A program made the translations under genes and the position numbers. The notes under the pieces were generated by a model. It saw only the letters and a list, made by a program, of their open reading frames with translations, was not told where the DNA came from and ran no database searches. Below, in pieces: positions 44,102 through 48,297 of a DNA stretch of 64,000 bases (positions within the stretch are counted from its first letter, which is position 1; each line of letters begins with the position of its first letter). The stretch covers positions 434,001 through 498,000 of the forward strand of contig NW_026933842.1 in the NCBI RefSeq assembly GCF_032062105.1, read 5' to 3'. This stretch comes from Saccostrea cucullata. Its lineage: Eukaryota.

Positions 44102-44914
44102 TTATTCTTTAAGTCTCCCCATTATAATTTCAAACATTTCTTTATCAAGGACCTCAGCCCATGAGTTAAACAAATATAGCTTATCTTTCCTGTTGTACAA
44201 TTCAAACTTTGCATACACAAGATTAGCATGCCTGACCTCGGACAAAGGTTTAACATGTTCTATTTTATAATAAGTGTCCTTTCTATTTCCGAAGAAAGAT
44301 AACCTGGAGACTTTGAGGGTGTCCACCACCTCCCCCACCCCACCTGCCGACAAACTTCCGATAATTCTCGGCATCACGTAGAGAACAGCTGGCATGAAAA
44401 GTACATTGGCAGCAACAAAGCCCGTCATAAGAATTGAGGGTGAAGGAACAGTGTATATGTGATAGATACAACTAGGGAGCAGAGTTGCACACACCAGCAG
44501 TTGGAATCTTTGTACCAGTCTTATGATATTTATTGGTGGGAAGAAGTAGAAACATTTGAACTCTGGTTTAGGACGTCCCACTGTTTTCTCCTGTTTATCA
44601 GTAGAAACCAGATTTCCTTTACCAGCTGAATTACCATGTTGATGAGATGCACGTTCTTCATTATCATGCACTTCTTGCTTGTTAGAAGTTAACATGACAT
44701 TTGTTGTGAAAGATCTTCTTGGACTCTCAGTGGACACAGAAAGAGTCCTTGGAATGTTTTGAGAATACATTCTTTGGTTACATTTCTGTTTGAAAAGTTC
44801 ACTTTGGGTATCTTTTACAGCTGCATTTTGGTGAATGTTTCTAATAAGTCTATTTATGACACTCCATGAAGAAATTACACTTCTTTTCCCAACATAAAGT
44901 TCCCTTAACAACAT
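44102..44914 (-). CDS. TMEM186: Transmembrane protein 186-like (mitochondrial, complex I assembly), 270 aa, single coding exon
   Basis: R/S-rich presequence-like N-terminus (MLLRELYVGKRSVISSWSVINRLIRNIH), FKCFYFFPPI, two hydrophobic segments, TLKVSRLSFFGNRKDTYYKIEHVKPL. Splice acceptor (ATTTCAG) precedes 44964. Confidence 0.8.
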   Translation of the reverse strand: MLLRELYVGKRSVISSWSVINRLIRNIHQNAAVKDTQSELFKQKCNQRMYSQNIPRTLSVSTESPRRSFTTNVMLTSNKQEVHDNEERASHQHGNSAGKGNLVSTDKQEKTVGRPKPEFKCFYFFPPINIIRLVQRFQLLVCATLLPSCIYHIYTVPSPSILMTGFVAANVLFMPAVLYVMPRIIGSLSAGGVGEVVDTLKVSRLSFFGNRKDTYYKIEHVKPLSEVRHANLVYAKFELYNRKDKLYLFNSWAEVLDKEMFEIIMGRLKE

Positions 44915-45195
44915 ATTTACACCACCAAGAGAAACACAGGAAATCAGAATATATGCTTTTCTTTCTGAAATGAAAATAAAAATATTTTTACAAAGGTGAT
45001 GGTGCAATATGAAATGGAATATTTTATCTCTGATGACACTTTATACATGTGAAGTTCACTTTAATTTATTTATTTATTTTTTTTTTGGAAAATTACAAGC
45101 ATACAGAACAGACGATCGGTAAAGACCTTAGGTGTAACAGGATTCTGAAAACATTAAAAACTTATTTTTTCCGAATTTAATATTGACAACCTACC

Positions 45196-47430
45196 TCAGG
45201 ATTCTTTCTGTTCACTTAAGCCAAATAAATTGTCAAGGAATTCCCCAAACTTCTTGGGTTGGCCAGGTGGAAAGGGTTTTAATACAGAAAAATCTGCAGA
45301 GGAAAGTGTCTCCACTAAGGTGCTAAAAAAACCAGATCAAATGTACATTCTAGGAAAAACAGAAAGAAAATTCAATAGAGCACACAATTTTTTTTTCTCC
45401 ACCAATGACATATACAGAAAATACTTTTGTATCAGAGAAGAAAATTATATCAGAGAAGAAAAATTTGAAAATTATTTAGAAACAGGTATACATCCAACAC
45501 AATCCAAATGTACAACAGTGACCTGTTTACCCATAACGCTGTCTCTCAGTATTTGTTATTAGATTTGTTGAGATTTGGCATTTGCCAGTAAATTTTTTTC
45601 AATTTTACAGAAAAATTTGATTACAAAAAAACTTAATTTAACAACAAGGTATTTGTCATTCCATAATACCACAGCGTTTTGGCAACCTGACATCGATTAT
45701 GTGTTTGAAAATTTAGCGACAAAAAGGTATATTCAATCTGTTTAACACAAGCCAAATGTACAGAACTTGAGGTCATTCTCCTGTTTCATAAATTCAAGCT
45801 TAAAATCCCCACTAAGAAATTTAGAATGTAGAAAAATATTGAGTATATATGTCAAAATTTTTCAACCCTGAACAGCATAGATTGTAAATATTCAAGGAAT
45901 TTGAAGATAATCTGTATTTGATGTTATAATCTCTAGAGGTTAAGCAATGGATACCCACCTTGTTGTGCAGTAATACAAATGTTTGTCTTTGTTGAGTTGA
46001 TAAGCAAGCTCTAGTTGATGGTTATTCATCAAATCATCATTGATCACTACAAGAAGGGGTTTATTTGCTGCCAGAGTTTCTAAGCAACTTCCAGCTCCTG
46101 TTCATCATTCAAAGAAAAGTCATAATATATAAATTATTTCCCAAGTTTTATATATCTGATAATTGTCAAATAATTTTTAACATATGGGTATGCAGATGTG
46201 TTAACAGTTTAAATGTCACTGGTTTGACAGAGAAAGTTTTAATTACATGTAACAAATTGTTGCAAATCAGTCTAGACAATGTATTAAATGTCATTAATTT
46301 ATTTACCTAAAACTGATATGCATCTACAAACATTGTATGTGTACATGATGTACATTCAGATACTACATAAAATCAAACTTTAAAGAGCTCAAAATCAAAA
46401 TCATTTAAAGCTAATAAAAAATTTTCCATCGCGAATATGAACAACATAAGTTTATAAATGATTTATTTTTCTGTCATGATATTAGTTAATCACAAATTTG
46501 CAATAAAATTTTCCGATGTCAAACATGCAGCTCATATTGCTTTAACTAATTATACCTATCCTGTATACATGATATAAACAGTCACTACTTACCAGCATGA
46601 CTGATGACTAAGTCTGCCTGATTGATGTCTTCAGTGATATTGGGCTTTAGCTTAAAAATCTCGACTTCTATACCTGGTACTCTGTCTATGGTAGGCTCCT
46701 TACCGCGGCCTATTTGAACTGTGACTTTTCTGTAACCCAAGTTCAGGAGAGTCTGAAAAATTTAAAGAATTTTGCTTAATGTTTCCTTTTCTACTGAGTG
46801 GATCTTCTTTTAAACAAACAAAAGTATGTCATTTAGTTTTACATGTGTACAATGGCAATTTATAGTCTCCTACAATAGCCAAAGGCACTCCCCATCTTAA
46901 TTGTTAAAAAAATATATCTACTATACTATAAACACACTCCCCATCTTAATTGTTAAAAAAATATATATCTAGTATACTATAAACAAAACAGTAAAGTAGA
47001 TATATATTTTTTTAACAATTAAGATGGGGAGTGCCTATGACAATAGCCTAACAAAATATCTGCTTTTCTAACACTACCTTGTTTATATCTTAAACTTTTA
47101 TCCTTCAAAATTGCCAACAATGAAAAAATTCAGTAACAGAACCAAGTAAGGCATGTGTTGTTGTTTTTTTTTTTATTTAAGAGCGTTTTAATGAAACTAA
47201 ACCGTTTTAAGGCAATCATAATGGTAAAATTACACAATCAGATAACTGAGGAAATTCGAGATGACATAAAACATTTGGACACAGACAAAATTGCTATTAA
47301 TCAATATGAAATTTATTGTGCTTACAGAAAGAACGGTTGAACTACAAACAGCGTTGGTCAGTTTTTCAAACTCTGTTGTGCCTACGGTGATAAATACTGA
47401 TCTCCCTCCCGGTTTTCGCTCTCTCGACAT
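45196..47430 (-). CDS. ALG13: UDP-N-acetylglucosamine transferase subunit ALG13 (short form, 176 aa)
   Basis: Exons 47430-47326, 46752-46593, 46097-45959, 45322-45196 (531 nt). Motifs [54 protein letters not shown]. Confidence 0.95.
46880..47039. mobile_element. Foldback MITE with an 8-bp TSD and a duplicated left arm, in ALG13 intron 1
   Basis: ACAATAGC|CAAAGGCACTCCCCATCTTAATTG...CAATTAAGATGGGGAGTGCCTATG|ACAATAGC. CACTCCCCATCTTAATTGTTAAAAAAATATAT is repeated in tandem. Confidence 0.8.
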
Positions 47431-48297
47431 TCTCCCGAAAAGGGCAACGTCGGAACAAGACAAGTCATACATAAACTTATTCGTGAAATGGATGGAAGAC
47501 ATGGAAAACGCGCCCACAATAAAAATCATAAATAAATCATCAAGTTTTAATGGTGAACTTGAACAGAAATAACCTTGTTATGTCTGTCTACAGAATTTTT
47601 TTCTGGTAGTGACTGGTCGAAGGAGGGGGATATCAGACTGGGTTTTTTTTTTTCAGAGTAAAAACATCTTGTTATGGACACTCCCTACTACAGCACTAAT
47701 ATGCTTATAAATATACATGTACTAAACAGGGAGCTCATTTGAGATTTGTTGTGTTTATTCTAGAACAAATTATTATACCCTCTCAATCAACAGTTGGATA
47801 TTGAATTTAGCAACATGCTACTAATTGCACATTGGTTGTGAAGAAAACACAAAATTTAATGCCATGAAAAAACTCAATATCATATTCAAAATTATATTGC
47901 TTTTTCACTTAAAATCATATTCCATGTGGGATAAATCTTATTATGATCATACCCCTTCTTCACACTACATCTCCCACAAAAAAATGAAAGAGACAGAGGA
48001 GGGAGAGAGAGACCTAAGAGGAGGAGACACCTCTAGAGTAGCAAACTATGTGACCAGATCAAAGGCTTGATATTTATCATATTGATTGAATTTTTCAAAT
48101 TAAAGTTCTGATAAGTAATATTCCAGTGTAGCATTCCTCCTAAATATCTTTAATACAATAATTGAACTGTTAATCTTAAAAGTATATTTGTCTTTGAAGA
48201 GATCTGTTGAAATGAGATAAAAACTGGGCTTAACAAAACACCATAACAATATAACATTTTTTATTATATCTTGTATATACAGTAACATAAACGAATT

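Follow-up and report, generated by a model that had tools for sequence, protein, structure and literature searches.

Two genes, ALG13 and TMEM186, follow one another on the minus strand of a 64,000-nt stretch of Saccostrea cucullata DNA (hereafter the window), with a short intron between them (Table 1). The locus sequence contains no N. All four ALG13 exons are bounded by GT-AG and together encode 176 codons; the second open reading frame (ORF), of 270 codons, starts at its own ATG. A preliminary description of this DNA had placed the ALG13 stop codon a single base before a GT donor and the TMEM186 exon directly beyond a 230-nt intron, and these coordinates were reproduced, the exact exon junction being present in a transcript contig (L022, below). 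When the exons are joined in silico, the spacer from the TGA to the ATG at 44914 is 51 nt long, has neither a stop nor an ATG, and leaves the two ORFs in one frame, as had been noted; the joined frame, given earlier as about 464 aa, runs stop-to-stop for 464 codons plus the final stop.

Table 1. Features of the ALG13-TMEM186 locus (window coordinates)
Feature	Position	Strand	Remarks
Putative CpG-rich promoter and 5′ leader, common to both cistrons	47401..47600	-	CpG observed/expected 1.23; conserved block
ALG13 coding exon 1	47326..47430	-	ATG at 47430; junction in L022
ALG13 exon 2	46593..46752	-	PF04101, E 1.2e-5; 100% match to L022
ALG13 exon 3	45959..46097	-	PF04101, E 1.2e-6; contains in-frame Met112
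ALG13 exon 4	45195..45322	-	TGA at 45198-45196, then one base, then donor
Intercistronic intron, 230 nt	44965..45194	-	GT-AG; spliced out in L022
Exon-5 part of spacer, 50 nt of 51	44915..44964	-	no AUG, no in-frame stop
TMEM186 ORF, single exon, 270 aa	44102..44914	-	presequence-like basic amphipathic N-terminus; single copy

Domain searches were run exon by exon, with natural database records (contig L012 and protein P0329) as the full-length queries. Matches to PF04101 (Glyco_tran_28_C) in exons 2 and 3 (E 1e-5 and 1e-6), together with nearest relatives named ALG13, identify the first ORF as a predicted short form of ALG13. The second ORF has a presequence-like N-terminus and a hydrophobic segment, and its Pfam match, to PF06979, is weak (E 0.02-0.1); a profile of named TMEM186 proteins gives it 124 bits, whereas the genome's other two ORFs of the PF06979 family score 21 and -1 bits. 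It is 82% identical to a Saccostrea echinata protein, its Ostrea edulis orthologue is annotated as TMEM186-like, and an oyster profile retrieves vertebrate, sea-urchin, and bivalve proteins named TMEM186, the name borne by its best relatives outside oysters. Its predicted product is assigned to TMEM186 and not to TMEM70 or TMEM223; a search of solved structures found no match. TMEM186 is an inner-membrane protein with a role in the biogenesis of complexes I and IV in human cells (PMC7618265). Both ORFs are real, conserved protein-coding genes.

The assembly holds one copy each of ALG13 and the second ORF, with no second copy or retrocopy of either, and with a single genomic copy a retrocopy was ruled out as the origin of the intronless contigs described below. 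In Magallana, the N-terminal half of TMEM186 carries a 9-residue tandem repeat of variable copy number (L008:6001-6882; P0006 and P0328). A direct duplication of about 45 nt lies in ALG13 intron 1 of the window (about 46985-46890, minus strand).

A single spliced bicistronic transcript had been proposed for the locus, and eight intronless contigs from three oyster species support it. The Logan contig L022 (SRR26159584, 1442 nt) is 97-100% identical to the exons of the window and contains all four junctions; exons 4 and 5 are joined exactly as predicted, giving the stop, 51 nt, and the ATG. Seven more intronless contigs, from two species of Crassostrea/Magallana type (L005, L006, and L039; L011-L014), read ALG13, stop, 12 nt, TMEM186, and three of them (L011, L012, and L039) hold both ORFs complete and free of introns. 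The RNA origin of these contigs is deduced from the precise loss of introns; contigs of the L005 species from other runs keep the intron (L004, L040, L043, and L048), and the Ostrea contigs retrieved in the RNA search were all intron-containing. A spliced mRNA with ALG13 and TMEM186 exists, and the join is kept across oyster genera. It carries two full, non-overlapping coding sequences on one processed mRNA and is in structure a dicistronic mRNA in the sense of SO:0000722 (FlyBase usage), from which both proteins would be translated.

Database annotation looks to have reacted to the common transcript. In RefSeq the pair appears as isoforms X1 and X2, under adjacent accessions in C. angulata and as X1/X2 also in C. 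gigas, and a 485-aa fusion model from M. gigas in UniRef (A0A8W8LJC7) splices out the stop. A literature search, with most subscription journals outside its range, found no paper on the ALG13-TMEM186 pair or on bicistronic bivalve loci; the joined oyster mRNA has apparently not been described before. A RefSeq isoform of ALG13 (X2, P0014) uses an alternative acceptor 27 nt upstream of exon 4 (window 45349-45337, minus strand), which would introduce a premature stop some 140 nt ahead of the last junction and is likely to yield a decay substrate.

The order ALG13, short intron, TMEM186 recurs in S. echinata, C. angulata, a C. virginica-like contig, and O. edulis; introns orthologous to the intercistronic intron measure 220-324 nt. 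The preliminary description had suggested a check for conserved linkage across bivalves: linkage holds in Saccostrea, Ostrea, and Crassostrea and fails in Pinctada and Mytilus. In Pinctada the two genes are on separate scaffolds, ALG13 on one of 71 Mb and TMEM186 on one of 102 Mb, where its head-to-head neighbor is a PALP-family gene; in Mytilus, TMEM186 is absent inside ALG13 and from the 10 kb downstream. In Pinctada, an acceptor-like site precedes the TMEM186 ATG by 8 nt. The TMEM186 coding exon, with its own 3′ splice site as still seen in Pinctada, may have landed behind ALG13 in the oyster ancestor, where the donor at the ALG13 stop would have captured it. This capture of a single exon is likely the simplest history, as judged from two outgroups. 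A protein tree left oyster relationships largely without resolution.

Two variants of these introns were seen. In an Ostrea-like contig (L009:1-984), the intron before TMEM186 is apparently expanded by insertion; ALG13 exon 4 is absent within the 984 nt and a displaced piece of the intron is kept, consistent with insertions. Intron 2 of Mytilus ALG13 (L029:54423-56557) contains about 20 tandem copies of the end of exon 2, spaced about 76 nt apart.

We consider it likely that the transcript is translated by separate initiation on a bicistronic mRNA, all routes taken together. One promoter upstream of ALG13 would give a five-exon mRNA with two complete ORFs, the first AUG (AUG1) serving ALG13 and the AUG of TMEM186 yielding, we infer, a separate protein. 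By the 50-nt rule, a stop codon near the last exon junction escapes junction-dependent decay, and the ALG13 stop, which in oysters sits 1-8 nt ahead of that junction, should spare the mRNA from it. In keeping with separate initiation, every oyster TMEM186 has a basic amphipathic presequence-like segment beginning at its own Met. Leaky scanning is the route that we favor by a modest measure: ribosomes would skip AUG1 and then bypass, or briefly translate, the few internal AUGs before reaching the TMEM186 start.

Internal AUGs are few. From AUG1 to the TMEM186 start there are four in S. cucullata and 1-5 in oysters (0.2-0.95 per 100 nt), compared with eight in Mytilus ALG13 and with 2.2-2.8 per 100 nt within TMEM186 itself. 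Those out of frame open ORFs of just 2-8 codons, those in frame have a weak context with a pyrimidine at -3 (Met112 of ALG13, in exon 3, has T at -3 and is kept in all oysters examined), and zero internal AUG frames overlap the TMEM186 start. The depletion of AUGs in ALG13 is no more than suggestive of leaky scanning. The observed number compared with that predicted from the protein is 4 versus 3.8 in S. cucullata, 5 versus 4.4 in S. echinata, and 1 versus 4.8 in one species (P 0.004); under a synonymous null, for which the codon reference set is small, the P values are 0.004, 0.065, 0.066, 0.71, and 0.81, and a shuffle of the gene's own codons gave no significant depletion. The weak Kozak-like context that ORF1 has in leaky-scanning bicistrons is not found here. 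In every oyster checked the base at -3 of AUG1 is A, which is not weak; only the +4 position (T) is poor.

Two contigs begin 19-22 nt ahead of AUG1. The leader may be longer, as RefSeq and some of the Logan models place the start 14 codons farther upstream, and models of this kind extend at least 42 nt. Two upstream ATGs occur in the window (47472 and 47468, minus strand) and neither is present in S. echinata; one is in frame with ALG13 and is the RefSeq start, and the other opens a 28-codon ORF that overlaps AUG1.

Ribosomes might instead finish ALG13, stay on the mRNA, and restart at TMEM186 12-51 nt downstream. The short AUG-free spacer found in all six orthologues, the adequate context of AUG1, and the A at -3 of the TMEM186 AUG would all suit such termination-reinitiation; the ALG13 ORF, however, is 172-176 codons long, and re-initiation after an ORF of that length seldom works efficiently unless a dedicated element assists it (reviewed in PMC10275272; see also the discussion of PMC11291117). 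Around the ALG13 stop, neither sequence nor structure is conserved, and the spacer varies in length. Re-initiation after the whole ALG13 ORF, the main rival to leaky scanning, is unlikely, and the stricter proposal, that oyster TMEM186 is made solely by efficient re-initiation after the full 176-codon ORF with no TURBS-like or structural element, so coupling complex I assembly to N-glycan synthesis in the endoplasmic reticulum, is quite unlikely; routes of separate initiation other than leaky scanning or re-initiation have only a very slight chance. A distinctly improbable alternative accepts the joined mRNA but has TMEM186 made mainly from a minor monocistronic transcript whose start lies within intron 4 or toward the end of ALG13; poly(A) signals in the intron could then, in some transcripts, terminate ALG13. 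The intron of the window does contain two AATAAA motifs, the name of S. echinata TMEM186 carries no isoform label, and in Drosophila 114 of the 159 dicistronic loci also express at least one of their genes as a monocistronic isoform (PMC4528330). Against it, ALG13 lies upstream in all eight spliced contigs that bear TMEM186 (three oyster species; contigs lose rare isoforms). The AATAAA motifs are missing in O. edulis and C. virginica and differently placed elsewhere, with 0.54 per 230 nt expected from the other introns. Intron 4 has a CpG observed/expected ratio of 0-0.27 in five orthologues (0.75 in S. cucullata, from three CpG), and the ratio at the ALG13 5′ end is 1.23, the remaining 200-nt segments of the locus giving 0-0.9; this CpG-rich stretch and the CpG-poor intron 4 of five orthologues disfavor an internal promoter. 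A block directly before the ALG13 ATG is conserved, being common to S. echinata and C. angulata. The statement that TMEM186 lacks a first exon of its own agrees with these data: none appears in the eight spliced contigs, and intron 4 has no conserved CpG-rich promoter. A scan with a bacterial promoter model, not applicable here, gave results at chance level.

The preliminary description had also raised readthrough of the ALG13 stop, giving an ALG13-spacer-TMEM186 fusion that would then be processed at its internal presequence. The part of this idea that stands is the frame in most oysters: the spacer is open and in frame in spliced contigs of S. cucullata (51 nt) and of two species of Magallana/Crassostrea type (12 nt), is predicted to be in frame in C. 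angulata (12), C. virginica (12), and O. edulis (51), and in one lineage the TAG is followed by CAA. The 12-nt spacers are one inherited state, however, so independent in-frame observations are few, and in the nearest relative, S. echinata, the orthologous splice sites predicted from the genome give a 49-nt spacer, with small indels and a TGA in TMEM186's frame; a weaker downstream acceptor there would yield a 12-nt in-frame spacer. The preliminary description had named a linker frame not kept in related species as grounds against readthrough, and the genome sequence of S. echinata bears this out in part. Stop and next base take five combinations across six species (TGA-G, TAG-G, TAA-A, TGA-G, TAG-C, and TAG-A), so that no conserved leaky stop codon and context is apparent. 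The reading frame of a nucleotide block common to the spacers differs between Saccostrea and Ostrea, and the spacer peptides of the genera are unrelated; neither an open frame nor a peptide seems to be kept after the stop. RNA structure downstream of the stop is unremarkable (z -1.4 to +1.1), searches of the locus found no Rfam family and no stimulatory structure or SECIS, and there was no fusion-length homologue among the candidates scored. Selenocysteine recoding was rejected, as orthologues carry TAG or TAA. Because the stop and its context vary, the spacer peptide is not conserved, and the presequences begin at TMEM186's own Met, readthrough is unlikely as a conserved mechanism, and we give the processed fusion little credence. 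A fusion could also arise if alternative splicing skipped the ALG13 stop: a weak donor at 45215, 21 nt upstream, would keep the frame, and the UniRef model from M. gigas represents such a splice form. Yet use of the equivalent site would run into a stop in S. echinata and would break the frame in O. edulis, and no contig uses the donor. The UniRef model loses the conserved C-terminus of ALG13, apparently takes the stop codon itself as acceptor, and appears typical of gene-prediction artefacts. We regard this route as exceedingly improbable.

Dicistronic mRNA is an already known class in animals; the ALG13-TMEM186 pair and the bivalve case are apparently new members of it. Drosophila has 159 dicistronic pairs, 45 of them exclusively dicistronic (PMC4528330), and 14 stringent bicistronic cases are reported in human (PMC13303939). 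The Drosophila loci stoned and Snapin resemble the oyster locus in their processed, spliced mRNA, in two non-overlapping, unrelated, conserved ORFs, and in the need for internal initiation at the second, and differ in host and gene pair; the names Alg13 and TMEM186 are missing from the supplements of PMC4528330. According to its title, the study of Wall et al. (2005), which PMC4528330 cites, links output of the second cistron to a lack of in-frame AUGs, whereas the oyster first cistron retains an internal in-frame Met. Leaky scanning has been proven by mutation in algal bicistrons and reported for stoned and Snapin (PMC11291117). Green-algal bicistrons share with the oyster locus two full ORFs, an AUG-free spacer, few AUGs before ORF2, and possibly a short leader; in contrast to them, position -3 of the oyster AUG1 does not make for a weak context, only one species shows significant AUG depletion, and the spacer contains an intron. 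The oyster locus resembles programmed readthrough genes in that the sequence behind the stop is open and in frame in most oysters; it differs from them in lacking a conserved leaky context, extension peptide, frame, or structure.

Human PIGY and SLC35A4 function in secretory-pathway glycosylation, and the upstream ORFs of human bicistrons of this kind encode microproteins of about 70-115 aa. The human pairs PYURF-PIGY, MIURF-MIEF1, ASDURF-ASNSD1, and STREMI-SLC35A4 (PMC13303939) are, like the oyster pair, made up of housekeeping genes, and PYURF-PIGY and STREMI-SLC35A4 likewise combine a mitochondrial protein with a glycosylation protein of the secretory pathway. In the human pairs the upstream ORF encodes a microprotein (STREMI has 103 aa; PMC13303939), often the mitochondrial member, whereas in oysters a four-exon enzyme of 176 aa is upstream and the mitochondrial protein downstream.

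With this locus, spliced dicistronic mRNAs are known from bivalves as well; the case is supported by transcript contigs from three oyster species, and outgroups set its bounds. The lineage-restricted origin would make the locus a clear example of how such a unit arises when one gene captures a lone coding exon lying behind it, and the oysters, in which the spacer ranges from 12 to 51 nt and the number of internal AUGs from 1 to 5, offer a compact natural comparison of leaky scanning with re-initiation. Current annotation misfiles the locus, presenting unrelated proteins as isoforms of one gene or as a false fusion, so RNA-seq counts, knockdowns, and edits aimed at ALG13 in oysters would also affect TMEM186.

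Upstream of ALG13, at a distance of about 870 nt, lies the last exon of a lysine-rich gene (window about 48365-48298, minus strand). Two other contigs (L007 and L008) have an RNA polymerase I A34-family gene at the equivalent place, and gene order is conserved. A tricistronic link to this upstream RNA polymerase I subunit gene is not supported: the gene has its own AATAAA and is joined to the locus in no contig. In L039, an intronless ORF for a 2-oxoacid dehydrogenase E2 (818-2243) stands head-to-head with ALG13 at a distance of 94 nt; the match of this contig to the C. angulata genome begins 13 nt ahead of the ATG, and the E2-ALG13 join is probably a cDNA or assembly chimera.
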